A stretch of DNA of 64,000 nucleotides, taken from sequence record NC_061445.1, one strand, 5' to 3'. A model generated the notes under the pieces. The model saw only the letters and a program-made list of their open reading frames with translations. It made no database searches and was not told the origin of the DNA. Numbering within the stretch: the first letter of the stretch is position 1; every line of letters begins with the position of its first letter. This document shows, one piece after another, positions 14,499-63,960 of this stretch. Position numbers and translations under genes: made by a program.

Positions 14499-14535
14499 TT
14501 GCTCACAAGGCAAAACTCAATATTGAGGAATAACA

Positions 14536-15816
14536 ATGGCACGTGGATTTGGTGACATTCAAGATAACAGCAAACGCGATAGTTTGCGCGAGTCGGAAAT
14601 CTTTGAAATCTTCCCTCTTTCGAAGAAAGCAAACGGCAACTGGGTATCAATCCGTCTGCTGAATCTTGACCTGCTTCCAATTAAGAAGCACTGGATCAAG
14701 ATCATGGGCGGCAAGGATAAAGATAAAGAAATCAAAATCCCGCGCATGTGCGTTAGCTTCGACCCGGACAATCAGAACAAACCTCTGAACGGTATGAAGT
14801 GTCCGTACTGTGGCATCGCTCACGGTAACGACGAATCTGGTGCGCCAGCGCAGTATGACTATAAGTGGTATGCGCAAGCGATCATCCGTGACGAGCAAGC
14901 TGCTGCGCCGCGTAAAATGCCTAAGCTCACTAAACAAGAGCAGAAAACCGGCAAGAAAGAAATGGGCAGTGAGTCTTGGACTCCTGTTATGTGTATTCCG
15001 CTGTCGAACTCTCTGGCTGGCAAAATCCGCGAACTCGGTGAACGTAACATTCACACGGTCAAAGATAAGAAGTCCGGCAAGAAGTCGAAGCAGGCGTTCC
15101 AGGTCAATCACGATAAGTACGGTTGTGATATCGAAATCAAATACAACCCGAAAAAATCACCGGCAGAGCGCTACACTATTGAGCGTGGCGATCACACGCC
15201 TCTGACCGAAGAAGAAAAAGGTTATCTGACCTGGGACTTCGACAACTGGAACGAAATCTACGACATGCTCGGTCGTCTGAACGAAGAAGCTGCTATGGCT
15301 GACTTCAAGAAGATGGACGTTATCGGCGTTAACACCAACGATGATGATGGTGATGACGATGAAGACGATGACGACGACATGGCGCTTGGCCGCAAGAAGA
15401 AAGGCGGCAAGGCAGACAAGAAAAAACGTCGCAGCGATGATGACGACGACGATGAGGACGAAGATGACGACGATGACGACGATGAAGATGATCGTCCGTC
15501 TAAGAAGTCCAAGAAGTCGAAACCAACCAAGTCTCGTAAGATGTTAGACGATGACGAGGATGATGACGACGACGATGAAGACGATGAAGATGATCGTCCG
15601 TCGAAGAAAAAGAAATCTTTGAAGGACAAAAAGTCCTCGAAGAAATCGTCTAAGAAGTCTAAGTCCTCAGATGACGATGACGACGAAGACGATGATGCAC
15701 CTAAGAAGAAGAAAAAGAAATCTTCTGACAAGGTGAAATCGTCTGATAAGAAGAAAAAGAAAAAGTCTTCTGACGACGATGATGATAAGCCGAAGAAAAA
15801 GAAAAAGAAAAAGTAA
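14536..15816 (+). CDS. gp32-like single-stranded DNA-binding protein with long Asp/Lys block tail
   Basis: Position before recA, IRLL...KHW...CPYC core, low-complexity C-terminus. Confidence 0.65.
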   Translation: MARGFGDIQDNSKRDSLRESEIFEIFPLSKKANGNWVSIRLLNLDLLPIKKHWIKIMGGKDKDKEIKIPRMCVSFDPDNQNKPLNGMKCPYCGIAHGNDESGAPAQYDYKWYAQAIIRDEQAAAPRKMPKLTKQEQKTGKKEMGSESWTPVMCIPLSNSLAGKIRELGERNIHTVKDKKSGKKSKQAFQVNHDKYGCDIEIKYNPKKSPAERYTIERGDHTPLTEEEKGYLTWDFDNWNEIYDMLGRLNEEAAMADFKKMDVIGVNTNDDDGDDDEDDDDDMALGRKKKGGKADKKKRRSDDDDDDEDEDDDDDDDEDDRPSKKSKKSKPTKSRKMLDDDEDDDDDDEDDEDDRPSKKKKSLKDKKSSKKSSKKSKSSDDDDDEDDDAPKKKKKKSSDKVKSSDKKKKKKSSDDDDDKPKKKKKKK

Positions 15817-15826
15817 TTCGCAACAC

Positions 15827-15853
15827 GGGGTAGCTTAGGCTGCCCCTTCTTTT
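15827..15853 (+). terminator. Intrinsic terminator
   Basis: GGGGTAGC-TTAG-GCTGCCCC followed by TTCTTTT. Confidence 0.75.
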
Positions 15854-15874
15854 CTCAATCTGGACTATCCCACA

Positions 15875-18406
15875 ATGGCGAAAACGAACAACAAGGCCGA
15901 GAAAAAGGCAGAGAAGAAAGCTAAAGTCAAAGCCAAGAAAAGTGGCGCATCGGCTGTAGCTTCTGACGATATCGGCGGCGTAGAGGTCATGGGCTTTGAC
16001 CTTGCGAGTTTGATGGACGATGTGCTTGACGGCATCGAAAAGAAAACGAAAGTAAGCTCTCAGGATGCAGCACGTCACGCACCTCGTATTTCTACTGGTT
16101 GCCTTGCGCTTGACATGTACCTGTCTGGTGGTATTGTACCGGGCGGTTGGTATACGTTCAGCGGCGGTGAGCAGTCGTGCAAGTCAACAATGACCATGAG
16201 TATCATGGCGAGCCTGATTCGTCTGCATTACTCTGGCATTAGTGTAGTGTTCGACTACGAAGGTTCAACCGATGCAGAGTACGTTGCTGGTCAGTTGAAG
16301 ACGTTCGGCGTTAAAGTTGATCCGAAGACAATCTTCGGTGTGCGTGACGACGAAGACGGTAGTTGGATCGTTAAGCCTAAGATCCGTTACTATGCACCAG
16401 ACAACGGTGAGCGCTTCTTCGATTATATGTCGATGCTGCGTCGTCGTCTGCCTGACAAGATCGTTGAGAAAGACGGCTCTGCGTACTACATCTTTGAGAA
16501 CAACAAAGAGAACGCGAAGAAGCTGGCTGGCAAGTACGACAAGAAATGGTTCAGTCGTAACAACCAGTTCAAAGTCGCTGCGCCTGACGGTCACATGCAA
16601 GCGATGGTTATCGTTGACTCTTATCCGGCAATGCTGCCTGATCAGGTCGATGATGATGACGGTTCGAAAGCAATGGCGCTGCAAGCGCGTATGTTCTCTG
16701 ACGGCATCAAACGTTTCCGTGGCGGTATGCGTCGTAAGATGATGACCATCGTTGGCGTTAACCAGTTGCGTCAGAAACCTGCTGTAATGTTCGGCAGCCC
16801 TGAGTATGAGCCCGGTGGCGATGCGTTGAAGTTCTACTGCTTCGACCGTGATACTCAGATTCGTACTAATCACGGTGTGCTGACTGCACCTCAGATCAAA
16901 GAGCTGTTGGACAACGGCACTGAGGTGAGCGTTGAGTCGTTCGATGGCTACCAGAAGATCAATGGTGCGTGGAAAGTTGAAGACGCTCCGTTCCCAATCG
17001 AACTGAACGCTGGTGGACACGCATACGTTGGTAGCGCTGAACACCGCCAGTTTACTTTCATGTTCGACACAACTGCTGATGGTATGGCCGTGCTGCGTCC
17101 TGAGTGGAATACGCTCAACCAGCTTGCTCAGTACCCAGAGCAGAAAGGTCAGTATGCAGCACTGCGCGTACCGCCTGTGAAAGAACTGAAAGAGAACGTG
17201 CCTGATGCGTTTGATGAAGCAAGCCAGCTCGTTAGTAACCTGCTTGGTAATGCTGACTTCGAAAGCGTACAACTGCCTCTGGCATCTTTCGGTGATACCA
17301 CGTTCGCAGCGAACGTACTGACCACCAATATGATTGGCGATCAGGACGATGTTCACACGTTCTCTTTGTGGGCACGTCACCTGCTGTCTATCGGTATCTA
17401 CGCGTATGCTGACGAAAGCGGTCTGCACATTCCGGGTCTGAACAAACATGAACTGGAAGCGGCTGTAGCGCAAGACGAACTCGGTGCGTTTGCTGGTATC
17501 AGCTTCGAAGCCACCAGCCGTCAACGTCAAACGCAGATGCTGTCTGTTATCGCTGACGTGTTCCCTGAACTGACTCGCTACGTTCTGGACTATCAGTTGC
17601 AGACCGGTCAGGATAAAATCTATCTGGGCCCAGAGCAAGACTTTGCTCAGGCACTCGATCTGATTCTGCACAAACAGATTGAAGGTTACGATGACCTGTA
17701 CGATCTGCTGATGCAGCAACTGGCCTACGTTGAAGACTGGTACAACTTCGACAACTCAATCGTTCCTGTTCCGTTCACGCTGAAAGCTATCGTGAATCCG
17801 ACTGAGTTCTGGGATGTGAACGTTGCCGAAACGTCTGTTGTGATCACTAACGGCTTCGTCAGTCACAACTCTGATGTGCGTGTGCGTCTGGCCTCTCGTG
17901 CTGTTCCTGAAGGTTGGCCGAAACTCAAAGACGCTCCAGGCATCGTTGGTGAGAAGTCTGTTACTGTCGAAGGCGGCACTGACCGCTATCGTTTCATTGC
18001 TGCTAAGACCATCAAGAACAAGATGGGTGGCATCCCTAACCAGAGCACTTGGCTGCGCTTGTGGGAAGCTGACGGCAACGGTGAAGCGCGCGGCTTTGAC
18101 CCAGTGTTTGATACGTGGCACTATCTGAAAACTCTCGGCCTGATTAACGGTACTCGTAAGAGCTTCAAGATCAAAGCGCCTTGCCCGCTCGCATCTGATG
18201 TTAAGATGGACTGGGATGACTTCCGTACTCTCATCAACGGCAGCAAGACTCAGGTTGTCGATGTGTGTAAGAAACTGAAAGTCAAACCTGCTGGCTTGCG
18301 TCTGTGGTGCTTCAAGTTCGTGCAGTCCACCAAGGGCAACGAGATGTTGAAGAACGCTATCAGTAAGTCGGCGAAGTCTTCTAACGACGATGACGACGAC
18401 GAGTAA
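15875..18406 (+). CDS. recA: RecA/UvsX recombinase precursor containing an intein
   Basis: ISTG.LALD, Walker A-like GGEQSCKST, VIVDSY, QARMFS, GVNQLR..P.VMFG.PE..PGG.ALKFY; 843 aa minus 344-aa intein leaves 499 aa. Confidence 0.9.
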   Translation: MAKTNNKAEKKAEKKAKVKAKKSGASAVASDDIGGVEVMGFDLASLMDDVLDGIEKKTKVSSQDAARHAPRISTGCLALDMYLSGGIVPGGWYTFSGGEQSCKSTMTMSIMASLIRLHYSGISVVFDYEGSTDAEYVAGQLKTFGVKVDPKTIFGVRDDEDGSWIVKPKIRYYAPDNGERFFDYMSMLRRRLPDKIVEKDGSAYYIFENNKENAKKLAGKYDKKWFSRNNQFKVAAPDGHMQAMVIVDSYPAMLPDQVDDDDGSKAMALQARMFSDGIKRFRGGMRRKMMTIVGVNQLRQKPAVMFGSPEYEPGGDALKFYCFDRDTQIRTNHGVLTAPQIKELLDNGTEVSVESFDGYQKINGAWKVEDAPFPIELNAGGHAYVGSAEHRQFTFMFDTTADGMAVLRPEWNTLNQLAQYPEQKGQYAALRVPPVKELKENVPDAFDEASQLVSNLLGNADFESVQLPLASFGDTTFAANVLTTNMIGDQDDVHTFSLWARHLLSIGIYAYADESGLHIPGLNKHELEAAVAQDELGAFAGISFEATSRQRQTQMLSVIADVFPELTRYVLDYQLQTGQDKIYLGPEQDFAQALDLILHKQIEGYDDLYDLLMQQLAYVEDWYNFDNSIVPVPFTLKAIVNPTEFWDVNVAETSVVITNGFVSHNSDVRVRLASRAVPEGWPKLKDAPGIVGEKSVTVEGGTDRYRFIAAKTIKNKMGGIPNQSTWLRLWEADGNGEARGFDPVFDTWHYLKTLGLINGTRKSFKIKAPCPLASDVKMDWDDFRTLINGSKTQVVDVCKKLKVKPAGLRLWCFKFVQSTKGNEMLKNAISKSAKSSNDDDDDE
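16838..17869 (+). mobile_element. Intein in RecA (Cys322-Asn665, 344 aa)
   Basis: Block A CFDRDTQIRTNHG, block B SAEH, blocks F/G FWDVNVAETSVVITNGFVSHN, Ser as +1 residue. Confidence 0.9.
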
Positions 18407-18413
18407 CACACGC

Positions 18414-18440
18414 GGGAGGGCTTCGGCTCTCCCATCTTTT
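18414..18440 (+). terminator. Intrinsic terminator
   Basis: GGGAGGGC-TTCG-GCTCTCCC then ATCTTTT. Confidence 0.75.
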
Positions 18441-18456
18441 GTTTGAGGAGAATGTA

Positions 18457-18885
18457 ATGCGCACTCAAATCTTTACCGCTGATATCCTTAATCTGGAAAC
18501 AGTGACTGTCAACGAAGAAGACGGTAGTGAAGTTCGTACACCCACTATCGTGCCTAACGTTGAAGGCGAACCTGAGTTTAACATCTACACCATTCAGTCT
18601 CTGATTCAGTCAACAACTACCGGCGAGCCTGTGTCTGACACGCGCCTGATTGTGTTGATCACACCTGACCTGCTGGCGGGCTTCTCTACTAACGGTCTGG
18701 AAAACTACTTCGACCCTATTGCTCGCGTCGAAGATATCGCTGCTGGTAACGTCGGTAGCGTCCTCGGAAAACAGGTTGTTATCAACGACAAGTCTGTTGC
18801 GCCGTGTCTTGCAGTAGCAAACGTTAGCGATGTTGAAGAGGGTGTCACAATCCTCGCGTACAGCGCCGCGCAGGTAAAACTGTAA
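18457..18885 (+). CDS. Hypothetical protein
   Basis: ATG 18457 after GAGGAG. Confidence 0.7.
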   Translation: MRTQIFTADILNLETVTVNEEDGSEVRTPTIVPNVEGEPEFNIYTIQSLIQSTTTGEPVSDTRLIVLITPDLLAGFSTNGLENYFDPIARVEDIAAGNVGSVLGKQVVINDKSVAPCLAVANVSDVEEGVTILAYSAAQVKL

Positions 18886-18939
18886 ATACTGATTAACAAC
18901 CGAACACAAATGCTGTGTGTAGTCTCGCCCGTCTTGGGC

Positions 18940-18970
18940 ATGGGAGAGCCGGATGGCCTCCCATTTTTTT
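18940..18970 (+). terminator. Intrinsic terminator
   Basis: ATGGGAG-A-GCC-GGAT-GGC-CTCCCAT plus T-tract. Confidence 0.75.
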
Positions 18971-18986
18971 ATTCTGAGGAATTTTT

Positions 18987-20060: not shown

Positions 20061-20108
20061 TAGCTCTTTTCTAAACTCCACGTATGGGCGTTATGCCCGG
20101 AGGTTAAT

Positions 20109-20867: not shown

Positions 20868-20940
20868 GAATATTCTTAGCCTGCTCTCTAATTTCTATAT
20901 GTTGGCAAGTAGTGCTGACGTATCGTTATTGGAGAATAAC

Positions 20941-21201
20941 ATGTGCGAACGTAGCCATCTGCGGTTGAAGTACCTCGCACGGTCATCGAACTGGTGCAAT
21001 AATAAAGTAAACGCTTGTAGTGAGCGGAAGGCGAGAGATGTTCAGTGCGAAGAATTTTTGGCTGCGACCAAAGATTGTCGTTCGATTCAGAACTCGTCCA
21101 GTGTTGTTTCTTTCTTCTCTGGCCAAGAGCTTGTTGGTCAGGCTATCTGGCGTGAGATAGAGGGAGACAACATGCTTCAATTCCGGTTGCTACTTGCTTA
21201 A
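20941..21201 (+). CDS. Small hypothetical protein
   Basis: ATG 20941 preceded by the GTTATT-GGAG-AATAAC SD hairpin. Confidence 0.45.
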   Translation: MCERSHLRLKYLARSSNWCNNKVNACSERKARDVQCEEFLAATKDCRSIQNSSSVVSFFSGQELVGQAIWREIEGDNMLQFRLLLA

Positions 21202-21205
21202 CGAC

Positions 21206-21240: not shown

Positions 21241-21296
21241 CTTATTCTATTGCTAATTTTCATCGACAAACACACTAACCGAATCTGAGGTAATTT

Positions 21297-23037: not shown

Positions 23038-23115
23038 GCAAATAACTGGTCAAAATAGCTCTTTATACGCACACGCGCCCGTGATACAATATATGCAGAC
23101 GCTACACAACGTAGC
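23038..23115 (+). promoter_or_regulatory. Composite early promoter element, copy 1
   Basis: CTGGTCAAAA 23046; TG-a-TACAAT 23085; GCTAC/GTAGC hairpin. Confidence 0.7.
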
Positions 23116-23143
23116 ACATACAACTAATGCTGAGGAGCATACA

Positions 23144-27200: not shown

Positions 27201-27505
27201 AGTATCTGGCTTGCATTGAACTGAGCACAAGAGAAGGTAATCTGAATCTACCTATCTTACCTAAGTGTGATATGCAGGCGTTTCTGCTGGACAGCCGTAC
27301 TAAAACGAAAGTGCCTATCAAGCTCAATGCCACAAACGTGGTGAAAGTCTGCGGCAAGACGTGTGGCAGCCTGCAATGGTTCGACTGCGTTAATCTGCTT
27401 ATTTGGTCGTCATTCGAGCCAGAGCGTTTCACGCTGTATATTGAGCGGACACTCAAAGCAGACGAGACAGCGCGCGCCCTGCAATCTGCTGAACTCTGCA
27501 AATAA
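27188..27505 (+). CDS. Hypothetical protein
   Basis: ATG 27188; stop lies inside promoter copy 3. Confidence 0.55.
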   Translation: MDNLKYLACIELSTREGNLNLPILPKCDMQAFLLDSRTKTKVPIKLNATNVVKVCGKTCGSLQWFDCVNLLIWSSFEPERFTLYIERTLKADETARALQSAELCK

Positions 27506-27570
27506 CTGGTCAAAATAGCCGTTCTGTTTAGTAGCTCGATATGATATACTAAGAGCGAGCGCTATTGCTC
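27498..27570 (+). promoter_or_regulatory. Composite early promoter element, copy 3
   Basis: CTGGTCAAAA 27506; TG-a-TATACT 27545; GAGC/GCTC hairpin. Confidence 0.7.
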
Positions 27571-27598
27571 AAAAACAACTAAAGCTGAGGAGCTTATC

Positions 27599-28039
27599 AT
27601 GACTACTACTTACAACATCGCTGATCTGAAAACCCCTGAAATGTTCGCAGATGCCCGCCTGGGTCACTTATCAGATTTCGCTGATAAACTTCGCGCTCTG
27701 CTGGGTCGTGAAGATATGTATCTGGAACTTGAAGCAGAAGAGGGTGCTGATATTTCAGACGTGTGCCCTGATGCAGATTCTGTTGTGGGGGACAATCTGA
27801 TCAACCTGCATATTCACTATGCAGATGACCCTGATCATGTAAGCGATAAGGGTGCATGGTACGCTTACTTAGCTTTCCCGCATGTTGAAAATCATTGGGG
27901 CGAGTGGACAAATAGTTTCATCCTGTTTGTCGAATCTAACGACGGGGATTTCCTTGAAGAGATCGCGTTCGAAAATGGCAACCCGAAAATGCTGTCTGAT
28001 ATTGTCGACCGCATTAACTACTGGTTCCCTGCCGAATAA
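27599..28039 (+). CDS. Acidic hypothetical protein
   Basis: 146 aa, SD hairpin upstream. Confidence 0.75.
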   Translation: MTTTYNIADLKTPEMFADARLGHLSDFADKLRALLGREDMYLELEAEEGADISDVCPDADSVVGDNLINLHIHYADDPDHVSDKGAWYAYLAFPHVENHWGEWTNSFILFVESNDGDFLEEIAFENGNPKMLSDIVDRINYWFPAE

Positions 28040-28086
28040 GTGATTTGTGTTGAGCATTCGCTGAGTGCTCAATGAAAATCCAAACA
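28040..28086 (+). repeat. Intergenic hairpin repeat, copy A
   Basis: GATTTGTG-TTGAGCATTC-GCT-GAGTGCTCAA-TGAAAATC. Confidence 0.75.
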
Positions 28087-28110
28087 ACACCCTAAGCTAA
28101 GGAGCTTAAC

Positions 28111-28428
28111 ATGTCTTCATCTACTACTCTGACTTTCATCTTCCCAGAAATGACTACTCTGGAAGTTTCAATCGGTAACGGCGTTGTGCCCGCTTATCTG
28201 GGTCTCGCCGAAAACAAAGACATAACATTCAGCGATGTTAAAGCGCTGCGTCTGATGGGCGATTCAAACATCGTGGGCGCAATGAGCCGCTTCGATCAGT
28301 CGATGCTTAACATGCTGATCGCCCGTCATGAAACGCACGAGCACATTCGTTGCCGTGACGCCATTGAGCATGGCACTGAGCATTTCCCGTCTACTTGTCT
28401 CTACCTGAAAGTAGCGCACCACCGCTAA
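28111..28428 (+). CDS. Hypothetical protein
   Basis: 105 aa, SD hairpin upstream. Confidence 0.7.
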   Translation: MSSSTTLTFIFPEMTTLEVSIGNGVVPAYLGLAENKDITFSDVKALRLMGDSNIVGAMSRFDQSMLNMLIARHETHEHIRCRDAIEHGTEHFPSTCLYLKVAHHR

Positions 28429-28472
28429 GATTTGTGAAGGGCATTCGCTGAGTGTCCTTTGAAAATCAAACA
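28429..28472 (+). repeat. Intergenic hairpin repeat, copy B
   Basis: GATTTGTG-AAGGGCATTC-GCT-GAGTGTCCTT-TGAAAATC. Confidence 0.75.
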
Positions 28473-28491
28473 CTGTTCTGAGGAGAACAAC

Positions 28492-28845
28492 ATGCACAAC
28501 ATCGAACTGCCTGTAGACGCTCGCCACTTTGACGATCTGACCAACGCAGAGTTCCTGCAAGTGTGTCGCGCTCTGTCTACTGTCACTGGTCGTGAAGACC
28601 TTGAGTTTCGTTCGCATCTGATGAGTCGCTTCATCGACATTGCGTATCGCTCTGGCGACACTAACACGTTCGGTATCAGTAAGTGCCGTGTGCTAATGCC
28701 GTCAGAAGTCCAACGTGAGGATATCGTTGAAGACTTCGAGATCCATCACGGCGATGCAGTCATCTCTATCGAACGCCAGCGCGATACAGAGACAACGCTG
28801 CAACGTATCGCAGGTGCCATTGAAGCCTGTTTACCAAGAGAGTGA
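28492..28845 (+). CDS. Hypothetical protein
   Basis: ATG 28492 after SD hairpin. Confidence 0.7.
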   Translation: MHNIELPVDARHFDDLTNAEFLQVCRALSTVTGREDLEFRSHLMSRFIDIAYRSGDTNTFGISKCRVLMPSEVQREDIVEDFEIHHGDAVISIERQRDTETTLQRIAGAIEACLPRE

Positions 28846-28916
28846 TTGTTGCTCGCAGATTCTTACGAGAGTCTGCTGTCAACATAACCCAAAATACCTA
28901 AGCTGAGGAGCTTAAC

Positions 28917-29327
28917 ATGAAACAATTCCCACGTCGCGGCGAAACGTACACGCTGAAACAAATCGAAACTGAACTGGACCTGCGTGACGCACCGTTCCTG
29001 CGTTTCATCCCGCAGAAAGTGCGTTATGAGCATGAGAGTGCAGCGGGCATTCAGGTTATTCAGTCTGCGAATGTCGTTGACCTGCACCACCTTGAAGGCT
29101 GGGCAGACACTGAGTGGGTATTCGTTCGTGAGACCGAAGAGTGGATTCCACTGTTCCGTGCGAAAGACGATGCCGCGATTGAGGCGCTCTGTGTTATCGA
29201 GCCTTCTACCGATTACAGTAGTCGTATTGATGGCGGTATGCACATCTACCCGAAAGGTACTGAGCATCGTCAATACGAACCGTATGACGAGAAGCTGCAT
29301 GGCGATCTGCTGGTGGCAGTAAAATAA
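28917..29327 (+). CDS. Hypothetical protein
   Basis: 136 aa, SD hairpin upstream. Confidence 0.7.
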   Translation: MKQFPRRGETYTLKQIETELDLRDAPFLRFIPQKVRYEHESAAGIQVIQSANVVDLHHLEGWADTEWVFVRETEEWIPLFRAKDDAAIEALCVIEPSTDYSSRIDGGMHIYPKGTEHRQYEPYDEKLHGDLLVAVK

Positions 29328-32448: not shown

Positions 32449-32982
32449 ATGGCAAAGTCACTGGGTGTATACATGACGTACATTCTGCGTCATAAACCTC
32501 AGGACATTGGCATCGCAATGGACACCCAAGGCTGGGTGTCTGTTTTGGATTTCTTGCAGAAAGCGAAGTACAAAAAGCAAGTGACCAGAGAGATGCTGAT
32601 CGAAGAAGTAGAAGCGGACGATAAAGGTCGTTTTGAGTTTAACTCGAACAAGTCCAAGATTCGTTGTGTTCAAGGTCATTCTGTTGAGCACGTCATTCTC
32701 AATCTCGAACCGTGGACTGATTGTTCGCCTCTGTATCATGGCACCGCAGAGAAGAATGTCGCTGCTATCCAGCATGAAGGTATTCTCCGACGTAAACGCA
32801 AGCACGTCCATATCAGCAACGATATCGAAACAGCTCGACGTGTTGGCCAACGCCACGGTGTACCTGTTGTGTTTCAAATCGACACTCAGGCAATGATCAC
32901 TCACGGCTATAAGTTCTACCGCGCAGAGAACGGCGTAATCTTAACTGAGTATGTACCGTCGCGCTATATCAGATTGGTGTGA
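32449..32982 (+). CDS. kptA: RNA 2'-phosphotransferase (KptA/Tpt1 family)
   Basis: YILRH, KGRFE, IRCVQGHS, LYHGT, RKHVHIS and ENGVILTEYVP motifs. Confidence 0.9.
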   Translation: MAKSLGVYMTYILRHKPQDIGIAMDTQGWVSVLDFLQKAKYKKQVTREMLIEEVEADDKGRFEFNSNKSKIRCVQGHSVEHVILNLEPWTDCSPLYHGTAEKNVAAIQHEGILRRKRKHVHISNDIETARRVGQRHGVPVVFQIDTQAMITHGYKFYRAENGVILTEYVPSRYIRLV

Positions 32983-33432: not shown

Positions 33433-33453
33433 TACTTACATGAGGATATGTAT

Positions 33454-36771: not shown

Positions 36772-37035
36772 ATGGCTGTAGGCTTTGTCAAAGATGATGG
36801 CGTCAACGATACCATCGAAACAAACGTGCTGAATGAGATCGACCGCGCTCGTTCAGAACTTCAAGGCGCAGGTTCTGATTACTGCGTCAACCCTGATTGC
36901 GGTGAGAAGATTCCTGTGATGCGTAAACTCGCTATGCCCAATGCGCGTTACTGCATCAACTGTCAGGCAGCGCACGACGGCACTGCTAACGTCGGCTATA
37001 ATCGCCGTGGCTCAAAAGATTCTCAACTGAGGTAG
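36772..37035 (+). CDS. DksA/TraR family C4 zinc-finger protein
   Basis: C..PDCGEKIP..RKLAMP.ARYCINCQ pattern, with N-terminal D...D acidic helix. Confidence 0.85.
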   Translation: MAVGFVKDDGVNDTIETNVLNEIDRARSELQGAGSDYCVNPDCGEKIPVMRKLAMPNARYCINCQAAHDGTANVGYNRRGSKDSQLR

Positions 37036-37040
37036 TTATT

Positions 37041-42569: not shown

Positions 42570-42622
42570 GGCTTGTTTCTGATGGTTGCCCTATGATACA
42601 CTGTTTATGAGCACTTTTGCTC
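42549..42622 (+). promoter_or_regulatory. Composite early promoter element, copy 5
   Basis: CTGGACAAAA 42557; TG-a-TACACT 42597; GAGCA/TGCTC hairpin. Confidence 0.7.
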
Positions 42623-52022: not shown

Positions 52023-52331
52023 ATGCCTGTTGTTACTCGCAGTAAACGTCTGGAAGATAAAGTCAAACACGCTGTAGAAATGTGTTGGGATGAAACTACT
52101 ACAGACAATGAGGGGCCGAAGACGTATAGTTTCTTGGCCACAACATTTGCACAGGATGGAAAAGAACTGCATGGCAGGGAAGTGCAAATGATCAACCATA
52201 TCCTGAGTGATGCGCGTTACGTTAACCTTTATGGGCGCTACGTGACCGCGTTACAAAAGAGCAAGCACGGTGACAGACTCATATTCCAACCCGTCGCTGA
52301 TCTCGAAGACATTATTGAACTGGAGCTGTAA
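52023..52331 (+). CDS. Hypothetical protein
   Basis: ATG 52023 after AGGA. Confidence 0.6.
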   Translation: MPVVTRSKRLEDKVKHAVEMCWDETTTDNEGPKTYSFLATTFAQDGKELHGREVQMINHILSDARYVNLYGRYVTALQKSKHGDRLIFQPVADLEDIIELEL

Positions 52332-52332
52332 C

Positions 52333-52641
52333 ATGGAAAAGATTAAACCTAATCTGCAATATATCCAAACGGTAACGCTGCGTACTCTTGAGGACATTGC
52401 GCAGCGTAAGCGTGAGCGCAATCTTCCGCCTAACACGTCATTCTCTATCAAGCAGTCACATCTGTTCCCTGAGCATGAGATGACGATTCGTAATGCAAGC
52501 GACATGGCGATCTTTCTATCATCACCGAGTTTGTGTGAAAAGTATGGTCGCTGGGCGATAGCTCCTGAGCGTAATGCACAAGGGGATCGCGTTGTCGTCT
52601 TCGTCCCTGTCCCAGAAATCCCTGATGTTGAGGAGCTGTAA
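52333..52641 (+). CDS. Hypothetical protein flanked by 16-bp direct repeats
   Basis: ATG 52333 after GGAG. Confidence 0.65.
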   Translation: MEKIKPNLQYIQTVTLRTLEDIAQRKRERNLPPNTSFSIKQSHLFPEHEMTIRNASDMAIFLSSPSLCEKYGRWAIAPERNAQGDRVVVFVPVPEIPDVEEL

Positions 52642-52642
52642 C

Positions 52643-53221
52643 ATGGAGCAGATCGATTTGTTTGATACTAAAGGTGCCCACGAGATTTCTGAGTATATAG
52701 AACTCGGTTCAGATGGACTTCCTCTAATGTTGGCTACACGCAATGACTGGCGAGTGTATGCTGCGTTCGGCGATCCTGTAGTGCGCGCGGAACTTTTGGA
52801 AAAGCACCCAGACCTGAAGCCGGGAAAATTGAAGTTCCGCAAGAAGCTGGTCATGATTCAAGAGTTTGTGTTGGTCACTCATGACACACTCAAGGAAAGT
52901 CTGCGCAAGAAACAAGGCGATGTATACTCTGGAAGCTACGACAGGGACCCGCAGTACCTGATCAATGTGTATAATCACACTGAGAAGGTAGCGTTGTTCA
53001 TGCGTGACTTCGAAGACTTCATGTCGGGCTTCATGAACGCCGTGCATCTGTTCACTGTGTCAACTGTGTATGACGGTCGCCTGTTGATCTTCGCAGAGAA
53101 CGGAGCACCTATTGTCTCCGCAGAAGAAACGCTGGAGATGCTTAACGAGATTGAGCACTTCATTAACCGAAGCAAAGTGTATCGCGTACACTCACAACAC
53201 GCCATCTACCGTACAATCTAA
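52643..53221 (+). CDS. Hypothetical protein
   Basis: ATG 52643 after GAGGAG. Confidence 0.65.
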   Translation: MEQIDLFDTKGAHEISEYIELGSDGLPLMLATRNDWRVYAAFGDPVVRAELLEKHPDLKPGKLKFRKKLVMIQEFVLVTHDTLKESLRKKQGDVYSGSYDRDPQYLINVYNHTEKVALFMRDFEDFMSGFMNAVHLFTVSTVYDGRLLIFAENGAPIVSAEETLEMLNEIEHFINRSKVYRVHSQHAIYRTI

Positions 53222-55403: not shown

Positions 55404-55407
55404 AACA

Positions 55408-55487
55408 GCAAAAATCTGGACAAAATGAGGGTAGTATGCGAAACTGCCCTATGCTATAATAGAAGCGTAGCATGTGCTACGCTTTCT
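55408..55487 (+). promoter_or_regulatory. Composite early promoter element, copy 8
   Basis: CTGGACAAAA 55416; AGGGTAGT/ACTGCCCT dyad; TG-c-TATAAT 55455; AAGCGTAGC/GCTACGCTT hairpin. Confidence 0.8.
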
Positions 55488-55511
55488 AACGTATGTCTGA
55501 GGAGACAAATC

Positions 55512-56855: not shown

Positions 56856-56994
56856 TGTTCTCTTTGGCCCGACTGCCCAGCGATGCTCATCCCCCAGAAG
56901 AGGTGCCTCGCGCAGAGGCATGGCAGTTCGGGTCCTTTTTGAAGCGCACTTGCGAGTACGCTGCATAAAGTAAAAACAAACAGGAGGCTGTTGA

Positions 56995-57750: not shown

Positions 57751-57900
57751 TATGTGCCTATAACGTTTTGACCGTGTGTTTATCTTTTCCCGGGCACACG
57801 GTCCTTTTTAAAGTCGCTTCGATGAGGCTGCTTTAAAAAGGGTTCAATACCCTTTGAGCGCACCGGGCTTTACGCGGTTTCCGCCTTGTGTGCTCTCATG
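57727..57900 (+). ncRNA. Candidate structured leader or small RNA
   Basis: About 190-nt ORF-free stretch with five successive inverted repeats; no family recognised. Confidence 0.35.
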
Positions 57901-57922
57901 CTAAACCGCAAAGGAAATAGAT

Positions 57923-58735: not shown

Positions 58736-58774
58736 GCAATAACGAGCAGGGCGCTGAAATATAGCTGCCCTGCT

Positions 58775-58863
58775 ATCTGCGAAGTATGCAGAAAACTGGA
58801 CAAAATCGTGGTTGTTATCTGACAGCCACCTATGCTACAATATATGCAGACGCAGTGAGCGTC
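58775..58863 (+). promoter_or_regulatory. Composite early promoter element, copy 10
   Basis: CTGGACAAAA 58796; GTGGTTGT/ACAGCCAC dyad; TG-c-TACAAT 58836; GACGC/GCGTC hairpin. Confidence 0.8.
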
Positions 58864-58901
58864 GAAATCAAACTAAACAACAATACTGAGGAGTATTTAT
58901 C

Positions 58902-60506
58902 ATGGCACGTATCGAAACTAACTCTAACCTGGTTGGCAAAACTATCATCCTGCTGAACGGCACCAAATCTAAAATCGAAGATGCTATCGCGTCCGGTTAC
59001 AAGGTGAAAGGTCAGAGCAAACGTATCGCAACCCGCTGCGTTATCAAAGAGGGTTCTCACTTCCGTGAGATCGAGCGCATGAATCTGAGCCAGCTTGAAG
59101 ATACCGGCGAAGGTTACGTCAAGCTGAAAGAAGCGAAAGCGTCCGGCAAGAAAACTGCCGGTAAGAAAGAAGCTGCAACGCCGAAAGCGTCCGGCAAGAA
59201 AACTTCTGGTAAGAAAGATGCGAAGCCGTCGAAAGACAAAGAACCTAAAGTTCGTCGCAAATCTTCCGAAGAGCAGTCCGAAGATTATCAGAATCTGGCA
59301 CACGCTATCATCAAAGGCGGCAAAGCTAAACCTGCAGTTGAAATCGAAACTGTTGACGAAGCGCTGACCGATACTGTGGCAAAACGTATCGCCGATATCG
59401 TGCTTAACACTGACGTTGCGAAAGTGTGCGCTGATAACAAAACGCCGATCGCAAACGCTCTGGATGTTACTTACGGTGCCGAGTATGCTGCTGATGGTAA
59501 CGTCATGCAGATCACTTTGAACCTGCAATACGCGAAGCCTGTCAAAGTGCTTGCTCGCCCTACGCTCGAAAATGCAGAAGCTATCGCAATGCGAGCGCAG
59601 AAAATGATCGCGCCTAAGCTGTCTAAGAAGCTGGCGAAAGCGATTCGTGAAGCGTTCAATATCGAAGACGCAGACGAGCTGGAAGCAGGTACTATGCTGC
59701 TGAAAGACGGCGAAGAGTTTGTCTTCTACGGCGAATCTGCGAAGCACCTCGGCAAAGCGCTGCTGTATGTCGTAGCTACCGACAAGTTCAAATCTGTCCT
59801 TGGCTCTACGCTGGGTGAGTACGAAATCCCAGACGCAGAAGAAGAAAACGACGACGAGGAAGAAGTCGAAGAAGAGGAAGAAGAGGTCGAAGAGGTCGAA
59901 GAGGAAGAAGAAGAAGACGGCGAAGAAGACGGCGAAGAAGAAGAAGACGGCGAAGAAGAAGATGCCGCCGAGTACGAATACGTCAAAGTCACTAAAGACC
60001 ATATCAGCATGGTTAACAAGAAAGTGACCGCGAAGTATCACGCCGCGCTGGCTGAACGCTTCAACACTACCGAAGAAGTTCTCGTCCCTGGCCTCGTATT
60101 GACTGACGGCGACACAACGTTCGCGTACCTTGGCTGTGATAGCAAAGGCGGCCTGCTCGTTATCGACGTAGAAGCTGAGGCAGATGATGAAGATGTTCTG
60201 CTGTATAGCAAAGCGGATATCAAAACGCTGAACGACTTCAACCCTGTGATCGATAGCGGCCTCGTTTCTGACGACGAAGAAGAAGACGGTGAAGAAGATA
60301 CCGAAGACTTCGAAGACGGTAACGACGATGAAGAAGAAGACGGCGAAGACGAAGAAGAGAGCTTCGAATTTGACGACGAAGAATCTGTTTACCTCGAAGA
60401 TCTGTCTGACGACGAACTGCGTGAACGTGCCGTTGAGCTGGGTCTGACTACACCGCGCAAATCTGAAAACATGACCGGCGCACAACTGCGCAAGCTGCTG
60501 AAATAA
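58902..60506 (+). CDS. Modular protein: K-rich repeat, acidic tracts, internal duplication, C-terminal Rho-N/HeH-like module
   Basis: 534 aa; SD hairpin upstream; paralogous to the next ORF. Confidence 0.8.
   Translation: MARIETNSNLVGKTIILLNGTKSKIEDAIASGYKVKGQSKRIATRCVIKEGSHFREIERMNLSQLEDTGEGYVKLKEAKASGKKTAGKKEAATPKASGKKTSGKKDAKPSKDKEPKVRRKSSEEQSEDYQNLAHAIIKGGKAKPAVEIETVDEALTDTVAKRIADIVLNTDVAKVCADNKTPIANALDVTYGAEYAADGNVMQITLNLQYAKPVKVLARPTLENAEAIAMRAQKMIAPKLSKKLAKAIREAFNIEDADELEAGTMLLKDGEEFVFYGESAKHLGKALLYVVATDKFKSVLGSTLGEYEIPDAEEENDDEEEVEEEEEEVEEVEEEEEEDGEEDGEEEEDGEEEDAAEYEYVKVTKDHISMVNKKVTAKYHAALAERFNTTEEVLVPGLVLTDGDTTFAYLGCDSKGGLLVIDVEAEADDEDVLLYSKADIKTLNDFNPVIDSGLVSDDEEEDGEEDTEDFEDGNDDEEEDGEDEEESFEFDDEESVYLEDLSDDELRERAVELGLTTPRKSENMTGAQLRKLLK
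59135..59204 (+). repeat. 22-bp direct repeat with 48-nt period, encoding KASGKKT twice
   Basis: GAAAGCGTCCGGCAAGAAAACT at 59135 and 59183. Confidence 0.85.
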
Positions 60507-60527
60507 TCTCGCTGTAAACTGAACGAC

Positions 60528-60557
60528 TGTGCGGTTCAAATCGAGCCGCACATTTAT
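60528..60557 (+). terminator. Hairpin, probable terminator
   Basis: TGTGCGGTTC-AAATC-GAGCCGCACA then TTTATT. Confidence 0.6.
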
Positions 60558-60587
60558 TGACAACTAAGCTGATTGAGGAATCACACT

Positions 60588-61826
60588 ATGTCAAACGCAA
60601 ACAAAAATCTGCTGAATGCCCGTGTTCGTCGTCTGGACGGTACTACCACTTACATCAACAAAGTGAACGCTAACGGTTATAGCACCGACGCGAAGGGCCC
60701 TCAAATCCCTGTGAAACGCATCGTGCTCGCGGGCAAAACGCTGAAAGAGATTGAAGCGCCCTACGCGAAAACTGAGCACGTTCTGATTGACGGCATCACT
60801 GTGAAGCTGAACAAGCGCCAGCAAAAAGATCTGCGCAACGATGAAATCGACGTTGACACGATCAAGCCTGATTTTAGTTCTCTGGTGTACATCGACCCGG
60901 AAACAGGCAAGCCTGCTGTAGCGAAAGCTACGAAGCCGAAAGGCGGTGTGAAAGCGACACGCGAGCGCAACAAAGACACGCGCTCTAAGAAAGAGCGTAA
61001 AGCAGAAGCAGACGCGTCGAGTGCTGACCTCGATATGATCCCACGCTCTGATGCGATTGACTGCAAAGCAGAGCTGGTGCAAATGATCGACGCGACAATC
61101 GCCGACGCAACGACGAAAGATCGTCGCAAGATGTTGAGCGAAGCGTTTGACATGGACTGGAAAGATGTTAAGCATCATGGTGGCAAGGGTGTTGTCAAGC
61201 ACATGGGACGCAAGGCAGCACAACGCGCCTGTGATAAGCTGCGCGTAGCAACTACCAGCGATGCGTATATTAAGCAGATGCCCATCGAGCTTAAACGTCT
61301 TATTCAAGACGGTAAGCTGACGCTCAACAAGAAACAGATTGAGCGTGTGTTAGACGTGTTTGGGCTTGATATGCAGTTCTATGCAACTGCGATGCAGACG
61401 CTGCTGGGTAATCTCAAGCTGTCGCTCGATAAATCTATCGAGAACCCGAAAGTGAAAGAGAAGAAAGCGAAACACAAACTCGCTGTGCCGACCTACGCGT
61501 CTGAGAAAGAACAGACCAAGCGTGTGCGCAAGATGACTGTAAAACTCATCAAGCCGCCTAAGTCTGCAATGGCAGAGGCGAAAGCGCACATCAAAGAGTC
61601 GAAAGCGACTATCGCCAAGAAGCTGGGAATCAAGCCTGCTGACGTGAAGCGTGGTCTGCTGTGTTATAAACCGAACGGCGTTGAGCTGATGTTCGTAGCT
61701 TGCGACATGACCGGCCCTGTCTTCGTTGAGAAAGACGGTAGCGAGTGCGTAATGTCACACGCGAACGTGAAGCACACTTTCAACCTGACGCTGGGCACTA
61801 ACTCTGAACTGGACGCGGCTGTATGA
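60588..61826 (+). CDS. Basic modular protein, paralog of ORF 58902
   Basis: ATG 60588 after GATT-GAGG-AATC; shared N- and C-terminal modules. Confidence 0.8.
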   Translation: MSNANKNLLNARVRRLDGTTTYINKVNANGYSTDAKGPQIPVKRIVLAGKTLKEIEAPYAKTEHVLIDGITVKLNKRQQKDLRNDEIDVDTIKPDFSSLVYIDPETGKPAVAKATKPKGGVKATRERNKDTRSKKERKAEADASSADLDMIPRSDAIDCKAELVQMIDATIADATTKDRRKMLSEAFDMDWKDVKHHGGKGVVKHMGRKAAQRACDKLRVATTSDAYIKQMPIELKRLIQDGKLTLNKKQIERVLDVFGLDMQFYATAMQTLLGNLKLSLDKSIENPKVKEKKAKHKLAVPTYASEKEQTKRVRKMTVKLIKPPKSAMAEAKAHIKESKATIAKKLGIKPADVKRGLLCYKPNGVELMFVACDMTGPVFVEKDGSECVMSHANVKHTFNLTLGTNSELDAAV

Positions 61827-62206
61827 CGAACAACGAGATTATCCTGACAGGTGTATTTGCTCAATTGTACTCGCGGCTGACTACAGCCGCTGTACTTGAA
61901 ACGTATGTGTACTATTCTGATTTGGCCCCTGTAGTGTTTGGTGTGCAACTGTCCACCGTGAGCAATTCGCAGTACAACGCCTTGTGGGAACTCGTTGCGA
62001 AAACAATGCGCGTCGATATCGCAGCGGGCAGACCACCGCTTGCTGCGTTGTACGTGTCTCGCGCAACTGACGAGAAGACACCGAGCAAAAAGTTCTTCAA
62101 AGAATACTACAAACTCACGGGCGTACATCTGTCTGAGACAGACTGGCGAGCACTCGTTGAACATGTGTGGAAATCTTATGCACCAGATCTTCGGGAGCCA
62201 TCATGA
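61823..62206 (+). CDS. Hypothetical protein
   Basis: ATGA overlap. Confidence 0.65.
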   Translation: MTNNEIILTGVFAQLYSRLTTAAVLETYVYYSDLAPVVFGVQLSTVSNSQYNALWELVAKTMRVDIAAGRPPLAALYVSRATDEKTPSKKFFKEYYKLTGVHLSETDWRALVEHVWKSYAPDLREPS

Positions 62207-62664
62207 AAAAGGCCAAAGTTGTAATTAGTCGCGGTGGCTATAGACCGTCATCGCAAGAAGAATCTCAAAAGCTGGTCGCTGAGTTTCTTCTCGGTAATAT
62301 CGGAATCAACCCTACTGTTATCAGCCAGCAGATGTTGCTCAACATTGCGAACTATAACTACCTGACGTCTATCGTAGACACGGGTAAAGCTACGCAAGCG
62401 AACCAGAGCACATTGCATAAAACTGTAAAAGAACTTAATGCGTTCTGTAGATCGCACAAAATTCCTCTGGGTTTGCTAATTATGCCCCATACTTCGACCA
62501 GCGATTATGCCGGTGATGAGGTGGTAGCGATTCCTTGGGAGCATGTGCGCTCGAACACATTGAGCCAGTCGGCCATCGAATCTCTGTTTGAAACAGTTGA
62601 AGCTGATGGTTACCCGCAGTTTGTGACTGATGCGAAGACAGTAGAGGGATACAATGTTTTATGA
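62203..62664 (+). CDS. Hypothetical protein
   Basis: ATG 62203 after GGGAG. Confidence 0.65.
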   Translation: MKKAKVVISRGGYRPSSQEESQKLVAEFLLGNIGINPTVISQQMLLNIANYNYLTSIVDTGKATQANQSTLHKTVKELNAFCRSHKIPLGLLIMPHTSTSDYAGDEVVAIPWEHVRSNTLSQSAIESLFETVEADGYPQFVTDAKTVEGYNVL

Positions 62665-63934
62665 TCACGTATTCAACCACGACGAGAAGCAATTGCTTTT
62701 GAAGGTGGCTGAGTCTAAATATCTGGTGCGGCTAGACTGCCCCGACTATTTGAAGAAGTCGAAACACGCGATTGAGATCAGACATACTGTGACCAACCGT
62801 GGCGAGCAACGTCGAAGCGGTACGATAACAACCGCATTCGTACCGCGCATTCATTCTGCGACTGTGCAGCGACTGGTACGTGAAGTGCGAGACAGCCAAA
62901 GCAAAAGCGCGTCTGAGGGACTCGCTGCGTTATTCGAGTTAGGCCTGGGTGTGCCGAAGCAACGTGATATCGCAACGTACCTGCGCGACTACTCGCGTGA
63001 GAACGATAAGAAGGGTGTGGGTATCAAGTATATCCGCAAACTGATTAACGAGTATCATCGCAAGCACCGTCATAGTTTTGCTGGCAGTCGCTGGTTGATG
63101 CCCGCTGCGTATACAGCGAACATGCTCAACATGCAGTCGTTCATTCATCTGAAAGAGAACGGTTACTCGAAGAAAGTCAAAGTACCCGACGGCGTTCCTG
63201 TGATCTTCATCTATCAGAACACGAACCACGAGAATGCAACGTACAGCCTGTGTGACGCATTCGTGATTAGCCCGCTCGGTTACCCGATGCCGTTCGCTCA
63301 AATCGCGTTGCGCCCTGAGTTCAAAGCTGCGCCGAAAGAGTTCAGCTCGAAAGCGTTTCGTGGTAAGAGCATGTACGCTATGGTAATGGGTGTGCTGCAC
63401 TGGGAGAAGGGCGATGCGCTCGATAACTTCCGTGAGCTGGTGGAGATTGACGACGAGCCGTATCTGACGTTGCTTAGTGATGAACGTTATGCTGATCGTC
63501 GTTCGCCTGAGTATCAAGCTCTACTGGACGAACGTGCTGCGATGAATGCGAAGCGCCAGAAGTGGAGTGACGTGATTGCGAAGTATGGCAACACGACACG
63601 CACACTCAAGCCAGAACAGGCTGAGCGTCTGGCAAAAGCCGAAGCATTCTTCATTAAGCGCAAAGAGTTCTTGGACGCTTTCGACAAGTTCGAAAAGAAA
63701 GAGAACAGCAAAGCCGCCCGTAAGTTTGCTGCCGCATCTGCATCGTTCGCTGCTGTTGATTGTGGTGTTGTGATTGACCGAACAACGTATCGCTCTGTGT
63801 CGTCAGGCTTGGATGTTGTGAACAAGATTCTCACTCGCTGGGGATTCACGACAATCAACACTGTCGATAGTAGTCAGAAGAAATCCATTTTAACCTATGA
63901 CCTGAAAAATGCAAGTCGCATTTGGTCTCTGTAA
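62654..63934 (+). CDS. Hypothetical protein
   Basis: 426-aa ORF with GAGG RBS. Confidence 0.7.
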   Translation: MFYDHVFNHDEKQLLLKVAESKYLVRLDCPDYLKKSKHAIEIRHTVTNRGEQRRSGTITTAFVPRIHSATVQRLVREVRDSQSKSASEGLAALFELGLGVPKQRDIATYLRDYSRENDKKGVGIKYIRKLINEYHRKHRHSFAGSRWLMPAAYTANMLNMQSFIHLKENGYSKKVKVPDGVPVIFIYQNTNHENATYSLCDAFVISPLGYPMPFAQIALRPEFKAAPKEFSSKAFRGKSMYAMVMGVLHWEKGDALDNFRELVEIDDEPYLTLLSDERYADRRSPEYQALLDERAAMNAKRQKWSDVIAKYGNTTRTLKPEQAERLAKAEAFFIKRKEFLDAFDKFEKKENSKAARKFAAASASFAAVDCGVVIDRTTYRSVSSGLDVVNKILTRWGFTTINTVDSSQKKSILTYDLKNASRIWSL

Positions 63935-63960
63935 ACAACTTATCTGAGGAGATAACGCAC

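Follow-up and report, generated by a model that had tools for sequence, protein, structure and literature searches.

Short RNA hairpins at ribosome binding sites (RBSs) govern translation initiation in several well described systems. The hallmark of CsrA, for example, is a GGA carried in loops on variable stems that lie over Shine-Dalgarno (SD) sequences. In the coat gene RBS of phage MS2, unstructured CA-rich 5' tails of 16-18 nucleotides (nt) strongly override a structured RBS, probably through ribosome standby mediated by protein S1 (PMC5934652). The T4 endonuclease RegB cuts structured RNA without S1 when GGA is in a loop and the 3' G is paired (PMC1702504; PMC3014915). Here we describe SD sequences whose core forms the tetraloop of a short hairpin in a 64,000-nt stretch of DNA, termed the window, that represents record positions 186001-250000 of NC_061445.1 and is 100% identical by megablast to the Erwinia jumbo phage pEa_SNUABM_3 (Alexandravirus; 266,175 base pairs (bp); host Erwinia amylovora). 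A first-pass annotation of the window had listed twelve such hairpins and two looser versions, and all of these sequences are present where it placed them. After our checks the accepted set consists of 11 sites (10 N-AGG loops and one GGAG loop) together with one conserved weak site at 33437. The element is almost certainly a selected RNA hairpin that acts in translation initiation. Positions below are those of the window unless they are given as record positions.

A typical site reads nnnCU-GAGG-AGnnn and contains a long SD, U-GAGG-AG (once AG-GAGG), that is complementary to the 3' end of 16S rRNA. The four central SD bases form the loop, and the outer SD bases together with three to four freely covarying pairs form a stem of 5-6 bp, with 2-6 nt separating this stem from the start codon. 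The invariant part of the element comprises the AGG of the loop and two closing pairs, U-A and C-G, and these are exactly the bases of the extended SD. The first loop position varies (G, A or U), as expected of the least important SD position, while covariation is limited to pairs 3-5, which lie outside the SD, and no base beyond the SD is conserved. Since the conserved bases are the SD bases, their conservation demands no reader besides the ribosome.

The frequency of these hairpins was assessed in two ways. A start-agnostic count considered all 256 tetraloops closed by perfect stems of 5 bp or longer, on both strands of the window, and found GAGG as the loop of such a stem in 9 of 119 cases on the + strand against 0.12 expected. 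The other 255 tetraloops gave at most two cases each on this strand, and the - strand had none. A start-conditioned count considered GAGG located at RBSs with stems of at least 4 bp, using as a null 3' flanks permuted among genes; 10 of 37 had such a stem, whereas 5000 permutations averaged 0.55 and never exceeded 5. Neither GGAG nor AGGA occurred as a loop at the RBS of an annotated start in this window count. Stem lengths at RBS GAGG sequences fall into two groups, of 0-2 bp or 4-6 bp. The start-agnostic enrichment, the flank permutation and the bimodal stems thus show that the observation is real and far above chance. Chance or base composition as the source of the hairpins is ruled out by the two counts together with shuffled and slid controls, and a single duplicated module is ruled out by the existence of nine different stems and by single-pair compensatory changes in orthologues.

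Hairpins are also found at orthologous genes of related phages. We compared syntenic 50-kb blocks (n=8) whose DNA identity to the window ranges from ~88% down to ~70%. These come from the Alexandravirus relatives pEa_SNUABM_32, Dickeya phage AD1, 2910A and phB78, as well as from Y3 (Sasquatchvirus), Yoloswag (Yoloswagvirus), the unclassified Yersinia phage fHe-Yen9-02 and Dickeya phage JA29 (Salmondvirus). GAGG is the top tetraloop in all of these blocks but that of JA29 (10, 7, 7, 8, 9, 5 and 4 cases), with other loops reaching at most 3. For a covariation analysis, 73 orthologous and paralogous sites were anchored on the loop, yielding 49 distinct sequences. Pairs 1-5 are formed in 88-94% of these sites and pairs 6-7 in 31-39%, which is background, so that the core of the element is a 5-bp stem. 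Overall, 82.9% of the cells are paired and the covariation score is 0.588, compared with 0.164 +/- 0.024 for shuffles (none of 500 as high as observed) and 0.08-0.17 for slid partners; the stems were therefore rightly described as covarying. Anchoring took the loop position with the longest stem and so carries a bias towards structure, from which the slid controls and the RNAalifold runs are independent. MAFFT put one site family out of register, and the covariation result stood regardless. RNAalifold applied to 86-nt upstream regions of two orthologue sets predicted the SD helix and nothing else.

Conservation of the element is high relative to its surroundings. Identity across orthologues is 88-90% in the stem arms and 93% in the loop but only 50% in the 15 nt upstream, and codon positions 1, 2 and 3 of the same orthologues, at 67, 72 and 55%, are less well conserved than the arms. 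The element is confined to the sense strand, with the loop ending 5-13 nt (mostly 8-10) 5' of the start codon. Given this sense-strand position, the SD distance and the covariation, an RNA hairpin is the sole reasonable reading. The SD hairpin furthermore tracks the gene and not the promoter. For example, the orthologue of the gene starting at 28111 keeps its hairpin either behind a promoter cassette (AD1, 2910A, phB78, fHe-Yen9-02) or behind an intercistronic hairpin (the window, pEa_SNUABM_32, Y3). When the window at 27582-28914 is set beside phage pEa_SNUABM_17 (L088:5683-7010), the latter has one AAGCT/AGCTT stem in common at four consecutive genes, the orthologue of the gene starting at 28492 included. 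Judging from such sequence patterns, RBS modules seem to be exchanged among neighbouring genes by gene conversion.

The whole pEa_SNUABM_3 genome was scanned for RBS hairpins, and these occur only on the + strand between record positions 200.5 and 250 kb. Hairpin genes make up 10 of the 82 genes inside this + strand block and 0 of the 255 genes elsewhere, where elsewhere means all 149 - strand genes (head, tail, sheath, replication) plus those + strand genes that lie in 0-47 and 250-266 kb. The signal is thus not phage-wide as had been proposed, all structural genes being among those that have none. Under a looser definition that admits loops of 3-8 nt and G-U pairs and scores by energy, hairpins of -3 kcal/mol or lower are present at 9 of 82 block genes versus 3 of 255 outside, with the GAGG tetraloop in the block only. 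Decoy hairpins away from start codons show no excess in the whole genome (3 observed versus ~1 expected). Strong SD-in-loop hairpins outside the block number only two and are of another design, namely ATGATTA-AGGAG-TAATCAT at record 166784 (- strand; 7 bp, 5-nt loop, -3.0 kcal/mol) and ACATCC-TGGA-GGGTGT at record 49203 (- strand; -5.4 kcal/mol). The proteins served by the block hairpins are mostly small, acidic and without assigned function, and therefore offer no clue from their function; the sole named one is SSB, whose hairpin we reject below. The block probably constitutes a pre-late (early or middle) class that is transcribed by the host sigma-70 polymerase, and the hairpin marks a gene-class-specific mode of translation control.

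Beyond these genomes, a scan of IMG/VR with one stem (AAGCTGAGGAGCTT) returned more than 117 loci, nearly all of them within coding sequence, and clusters at RBSs occurred in Alexandravirus isolates only. A sample of 16 T4 early genes had no such hairpins. A general phage habit is ruled out by these two results, and on the sequences compared the element is specific to this phage clade, within which three or more phage genera, as well as an unclassified Yersinia phage, retain it. Rfam gave no match at gathering score anywhere in the window and a single chance-level match (E = 0.69) in 27400-29000, and literature searches found no account of such hairpins in these phages. Going by these two sources, the element is, as far as they show, undescribed so far.

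The accepted sites, all on the + strand, begin with GTTATT-GGAG-AATAAC at 20925..20940 (-2.3 kcal/mol). This hairpin stands as first reported, though the gene that it serves required correction, as it precedes the in-frame ATG at 20941 and not the annotated start at 20899 (gene 20899-21201). The annotated start is probably wrong, with ATG 20941 being conserved in relatives and the annotated start in pEa_SNUABM_32 and the ATG at 20899 missing from Y3. The hairpin is kept in pEa_SNUABM_32 and Y3, has one more pair, with changes in both arms, in phB78, becomes a 6-bp stem with a 5-nt loop in AD1 and 2910A and reads TAATT-GGGG-AATTA in Yoloswag. A start at 20941 gives a Cys-rich protein of 86 amino acids (aa), and an 11-bp hairpin (20897-20923) lies directly 5'. 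ATGCT-GAGG-AGCAT at 23127..23140 (start 23144; -4.1 kcal/mol) belongs to the first gene behind a promoter cassette, and its 3' arm has a pairing probability (P) of ~0.97 in context. AAGCT-GAGG-AGCTT at 27582..27595 (start 27599) likewise serves the first gene behind a cassette and is ACGCT/AGCGT in Y3, a compensatory change of A-U to C-G.

Three further sites follow closely. TAAGCT-AAGG-AGCTTA at 28093..28108 (start 28111; -4.2 kcal/mol) has a GAGG loop in seven phages, with stems ACGCT/AGCGT in fHe-Yen9-02 and TAGCT/AGCTA in Yoloswag. TGTTCT-GAGG-AGAACA at 28474..28489 (start 28492; -5.1 kcal/mol) has undergone a swap of the whole stem in pEa_SNUABM_17, where TAAGCT/AGCTTA replaces TGTTCT/AGAACA (L088). 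TAAGCT-GAGG-AGCTTA at 28899..28914 (start 28917; -5.2 kcal/mol) is compensated to ATGCT/AGCAT in Y3, and in 2910A its stem is preserved through a G-U pair.

The remaining sites lie towards the end of the window. TGTCT-GAGG-AGACA at 55494..55507 (start 55512; first gene behind a cassette; -4.2 kcal/mol) is represented by the same 14 nt in five phages in which leader and spacer differ, and by the compensated stem AGTCT/AGACT in Y3. AACAG-GAGG-CTGTT at 56979..56992 (start 56995; -3.4 kcal/mol), in which the SD (AGGAGG) runs into the 5' arm, is identical in six phages. AATACT-GAGG-AGTATT at 58882..58897 (start 58902; first gene behind a cassette) corresponds to TAATTCT/AGAATTA in fHe-Yen9-02 and TATTTCT-TAGG-AGAAATA in JA29. 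RNAalifold on nine orthologues of this site yields this helix alone, and in the most distant phages detectable DNA homology of the gene starting at 58902 begins at the hairpin. TGATT-GAGG-AATCA at 60570..60583 (start 60588; -1.9 kcal/mol) was first reported as a 4-bp stem starting at 60571; the hairpin holds but its stem is really 5 bp, TGATT/AATCA. It is identical in six phages and missing in Yoloswag, fHe-Yen9-02 and JA29. TTATCT-GAGG-AGATAA at 63940..63955 (start 63961) is kept in six phages, is ~50% formed in the predicted ensemble and has the stop codon of the upstream gene 5 nt before it.

Of the two looser versions, that at 33437..33452 (+ strand; start 33454; first gene behind a cassette), TACAT-GAGGAT-ATGTA, is retained as conserved but weak, having five A-U-rich pairs and a 6-nt loop, and missing the -1.5 kcal/mol cut-off for listing. 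One change in 2910A converts it to TACATG-AGGA-CATGTA, and Y3 has TACATG-AGGAA-CATGTA. AACT-GAGGT-AGTT (37025..37037, +) is rejected as it is not kept in the orthologues of pEa_SNUABM_32, AD1 and 2910A. The 4-bp TATT-GAGG-AATA of the SSB gene (14521..14532, +) had also been counted as a member, but its energy is 0.0, the fold is disfavoured with the loop mostly paired elsewhere in context, and among orthologues it is broken in pEa_SNUABM_32 and re-registered in Y3. Two adjacent genes that start at 52333 and 52643 have a common RBS module, G(G)AGCTGTAAC-ATG (52320-52335 and 52630-52645). For the 52643 gene, a 6-bp stem (ATGTT.../...AACAT) would leave the SD inside a loop of 8 nt, with the start codon's first bases taking part in the pairing. 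Around starts, GGA is scarce genome-wide at ~0.45 per 63 nt, upstream and downstream alike, versus ~1.05 expected from composition.

The sequence that precedes the hairpins has a recurrent layout. An A-rich and G-poor leader of 15-25 nt lies between two hairpins, as a second hairpin, either a 5' stem-loop of the transcript or an intercistronic one, is always present 5' of the leader. The 18 nt directly 5' of the 11 stems contain 44% A, 25% C, 10% G and 21% T, compared with 27/26/22/26 at the same position in 326 other genes. The depletion of G is significant (p = 2e-4), AACAAC-like runs are frequent and the leader is predicted to be unpaired. An example is 58864..58881 (+), directly 5' of the 58882 hairpin, and equivalents lie before the other hairpins. 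This leader is likely a standby or enhancer platform.

Further upstream, hairpins often mark the first gene after a repeated promoter cassette, as had been noticed before. The cassette at 58797..58841 (+) consists of a TGGACAAAAT box, a stretch of ~27 nt and an extended -10, TGnTAcAAT. Other copies of ~45 nt each, also on the + strand, start at 23047, 27507, 33361, 42558, 55417 and 57678 and at record 261605. The genome has eight good copies, all on the + strand and seven of them in the window and block, and five directly drive a gene with a hairpin RBS. Their consensus, (C)TGCAAA-TAAC-TGGaCAAAAT followed after ~27 nt by TGnTAcAAT, suggests an extended -10 promoter of the sigma-70 type that also has a conserved box around -50. 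A 5'-proximal transcript hairpin, GACGC-AGTGA-GCGTC, follows at 58849..58863 (+), and analogous 5' stem-loops occur at 23101-23115, 27553-27570, 42609-42622 and 55464-55483 (+), a few bases from the likely transcription start. The 58849 stem differs yet persists in Yoloswag (TGAGC/GCTCA) and JA29 (CGGC/GCCG; alignment A2). Because the stem differs between sites and between orthologues, this 5'-terminal stem-loop is probably a 5' mRNA stabiliser.

At internal genes the 5' hairpin is replaced by intercistronic hairpins on the + strand at 28050-28072, 28437-28460, 28855-28876, 60528-60552 and 20897-20923. Those at 28050, 28437 and 28855 separate four consecutive small genes; since these three have no U-run they are not obvious terminators, and they may be processing or stabilising sites. 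The first two have a common loop, TTCGCTGAG, on different stems (TTGAGCA/TGCTCAA and AAGGGCA/TGTCCTT).

Energetically, the SD hairpins are marginal. Predicted energies range from -1.9 to -5.2 kcal/mol at 37 C, and cooling to 28 C lowers them by ~1 kcal/mol. When flanking sequence is included, this hairpin dominates the predicted local folding. Its 3' arm, to which the AG of the SD belongs, is paired at P ~0.95 at 9 of the 11 sites that we accept, and the start codon remains for the most part unpaired. A 4-nt loop cannot fully pair with the anti-SD while the stem is closed, and therefore the stem must open. The notion that the SD is displayed in the loop thus applies to GAGG itself, which is free, but not to the flanking SD bases (5' U and 3' AG), which are paired, so that full SD pairing needs an open stem. 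Pairing between SD and anti-SD is stronger in the hairpin genes (-8.7 kcal/mol) than in the other 327 genes (-6.6 kcal/mol; p = 5.5e-4), and by these modelled energies the gain of ~2 kcal/mol would roughly offset the cost of opening the hairpin.

The explanation that we favour, at a level of confidence somewhat short of even, is that of a gated RBS, complete in itself, that relies on ribosome standby. The hairpin would fold on transcription and cage the purine-rich SD, so that neighbouring sequence would not affect the site and competing partners could not pair with it. Meanwhile, 30S subunits would wait on the single-stranded leader by means of protein S1, and would capture the SD either when the short stem breathes or after pairing nucleated in the loop, with the extra 2 kcal/mol of SD pairing covering much of the opening cost. 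The outcome would be a self-contained gated RBS module suited to the heads of transcripts or to positions past intercistronic gaps. At 63940 a terminating upstream ribosome may open the stem and so enforce translational coupling. The gated RBS is favoured because the layout of hairpin, A/C-rich strand, RBS hairpin and AUG matches the arrangement tested in MS2. Two elements that standby calls for are found here, namely a predicted structure containing SD bases that must open and an adjacent unstructured stretch of 15-20 nt.

Several observations weigh against this explanation. If strong expression alone were the aim, hairpins would be predicted at the genes for the major head protein, the sheath and other abundant late products, and none of these has one. 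A hairpin of 2-5 kcal/mol by itself lowers initiation, so that a pure enhancer role fails, and any advantage from gating is a matter of speculation. The strict GAGG tetraloop is more uniform than a tuner of stability needs to be; none of the N-AGG sites of the window uses a GGAG or AGGA register or a loop of 5-7 nt, and 20925 has a GGAG tetraloop. The assignment of the block to the pre-late class, moreover, is drawn solely from the sigma-70-like promoter cassettes and the small acidic proteins. The absence of the design from late genes and the uniformity of the GAGG loop lend some weight to a trans-acting reader.

A tentative second explanation, which we regard as possible but doubtful, is that the hairpin is an operator for a trans-acting factor, with a phage protein, or a phage-modified host protein, reading the GAGG loop on any 5-bp stem. 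Such a factor would block the SD in the manner of RegA, MS2 coat protein or gp43, or cut it in the manner of T4 RegB, and so shut off the pre-late genes. It would account for the restriction of the element to one gene class and one clade, as well as for the great uniformity of the tetraloop and closing pairs and for arms that are more conserved than the proteins. The GGAG in CU-GAGG-AG also spans the junction of loop and stem with its last G paired, which is near to the S1-independent substrate of RegB. According to a preprint (bioRxiv 10.1101/2024.02.24.581662), T4 early genes likewise favour GAGG. Against this, SD function already accounts for every invariant base, there is no excess of decoys away from start codons, and the closed hairpin differs from the RegB substrate in that it pairs the A of GGA. 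None of the 339 annotated genes has a product name that denotes a translational repressor or an RNA endonuclease. The genome also encodes no recognizable RegB homologue, as T4 RegB (query L133:3279-3740, - strand) compared with 2995 open reading frames of at least 40 aa and with the six-frame genome gave best E values of 0.5 (phmmer) and 0.47 (tblastn), these being sequence-only searches that a relative in fold could escape. Thus, of the earlier proposal of a translational control signal read by a phage or host factor, the control signal survives, while a separate reader is not required by the conservation pattern and no RegB homologue is encoded. With similar reserve, the hairpins might be the cis sites of a new post-transcriptional regulon of Alexandravirus-like jumbo phages that is read by a dedicated phage protein. 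The candidate reader of such a regulon could be a RegB-like endonuclease of another fold or a translational repressor or activator, and it could switch the leading pre-late genes jointly.

A role in mRNA stability is improbable. It would have the SD hairpin and the upstream hairpin shield the initiation region and the 5' segment from endonucleases when it is free of ribosomes, so that early messages live longer in the face of RNase E or G, host toxins or a phage host-shutoff nuclease that act on single-stranded purine-rich sites. Stem-loops at the 5' end are established stabilisers of mRNA in E. coli, which counts for this role, as do the conserved two-hairpin layout and a leader poor in G and T. 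Secondary structure also inhibits RegB and similar enzymes (PMC1702504). However, neither the SD core, which remains unpaired in the loop, nor the long leader is protected, five base pairs make a poor barrier and the restriction to one gene class is left unexplained.

Binding by the host regulator CsrA/RsmA, either to repress the gene or to allow the phage to titrate the regulator, is very unlikely. The idea draws on the CsrA hallmark described above and on the presence of RsmA in Erwinia, yet the register is wrong, since at each of the 10 N-AGG sites of the window the 3' arm begins with the A of GGA; the loop was correctly said from the outset not to fit the CsrA consensus. At 20925 the GGA lies within the GGAG loop, and none of the 39 AGGA occurrences at RBSs of the window forms a loop. 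A CsrA dimer normally spans two GGA sites, but at 8 of the 11 hairpins the 63 nt to each side contain no second GGA, and at the remaining 3 one lies 52-58 nt downstream. There is also no obvious benefit in a host factor that represses the phage's own early genes.

There is only a slim chance that the hairpins are RNA thermometers whose marginal stems let translation of early genes rise with temperature. Hairpins of the fourU and ROSE types that occlude the SD do work as thermometers, and the energies here are low, fall in a narrow range and shift by ~1 kcal/mol between 28 and 37 C. In those terms, however, the SD core should be paired and not in a loop, and the present stems are perfect Watson-Crick helices without mismatches or U-G runs; neither is there an ecological rationale for a phage of orchards and streams, nor an explanation of the class restriction. 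Scarcely credible is an absence of any RNA function, with the sites being palindromes for a DNA-binding protein or duplicated repeats, as neighbours sharing identical modules (28093 and 28899) and the four pEa_SNUABM_17 genes with the same stem might suggest, for this reading comes close to being refuted by the covariation, the arms being wholly different among sites and so unreadable by a single DNA-binding protein, the asymmetric loop lying always on the sense strand at SD distance, and the orthologues showing single-pair compensation and arms more constrained than the coding sequence. A lambdoid boxB (nut) hairpin was also considered and rejected, as the loop has 4 nt and is not a GNRA pentaloop and the hairpins are locked 2-6 nt before starts, those of internal genes included, although no search for boxA was made.

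Structured RBSs have usually been studied singly, and here one design recurs at some ten genes of one class. The sites form a natural set of stem variants for studying initiation on partly caged SDs, including standby, unfolding by S1 and loop nucleation, and they may offer a compact and context-independent RBS module for synthetic biology. The hairpin also marks true starts, as in the change from 20899 to 20941, and it defines a gene class in genomes where ~90% of genes are without annotation. Should a trans factor read the hairpin, jumbo phages would prove to have a temporal control system of a new kind, comparable to RegB or RegA of T4. Elsewhere in the window an RNA ligase (12556-13023), an RNA 2'-phosphotransferase (Tpt1/KptA-like; 32449-32982) and a protein labelled "CRISPR/Cas system associated" (7294-8379) are annotated. 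Together they form an RNA-repair toolkit of the kind typical of counter-defence against host anticodon nucleases.

Among known systems, the PeSL cassettes of T4-type phages, said to have been described by Arbiol et al. in 2010, are reportedly repeated, mobile intergenic modules of early promoter and stem-loop that flank small genes without assigned function and can mediate shuffling. The combination of cassette, 5' hairpin and RBS module, with stem exchange between neighbours, resembles them, a likeness that concerns the cassette and not the SD hairpin, and we know of no PeSL described with an SD in the loop of a hairpin. The operators of phage repressors, such as the MS2 coat-replicase hairpin, the T4 gp43 operator and the RegA sites, likewise place a small hairpin at or near an RBS to control initiation. 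Those operators serve single genes (unstructured AU-rich sites in the case of RegA) and have loop bases unrelated to the SD, whereas the present hairpins serve many genes and their conserved bases are the SD. CsrA/RsmA hairpins, in CsrB/RsmZ and in target mRNAs, share with ours a purine SD-like loop motif on variable short stems, often over the SD. However, the CsrA loop is N-GGA closed by A-U, while the loop here reads G-A-G-G and leaves the A of GGA to the stem, and it occurs as single sites in phage genes only. T4 RegB, the closest precedent for a trans-acting reader, inactivates early mRNAs at GGAG SDs; its targets are similar in being a class-specific signal in pre-late SDs, and GGAG is present in 9 of the 11 sites. 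They differ in that a RegB homologue is not encoded here, the A of GGA is paired and the 16 T4 early genes have no hairpins; the A-rich 3' element of RegB targets, GGAGRAYARAA, has no counterpart at the sites, where GGAG is followed by the 3' arm (for example CUUAAC or AACAAC) with no common A-rich consensus. The MS2 coat RBS with standby has, as here, an RBS hairpin that must open and an unstructured C/A-rich strand of ~16-20 nt on its 5' side (PMC5934652). The MS2 stem sequesters both SD and AUG at -10 to -11 kcal/mol. In contrast, the stem described here is short, holds the SD core in its loop, leaves the AUG outside and is repeated at about ten genes of one class.

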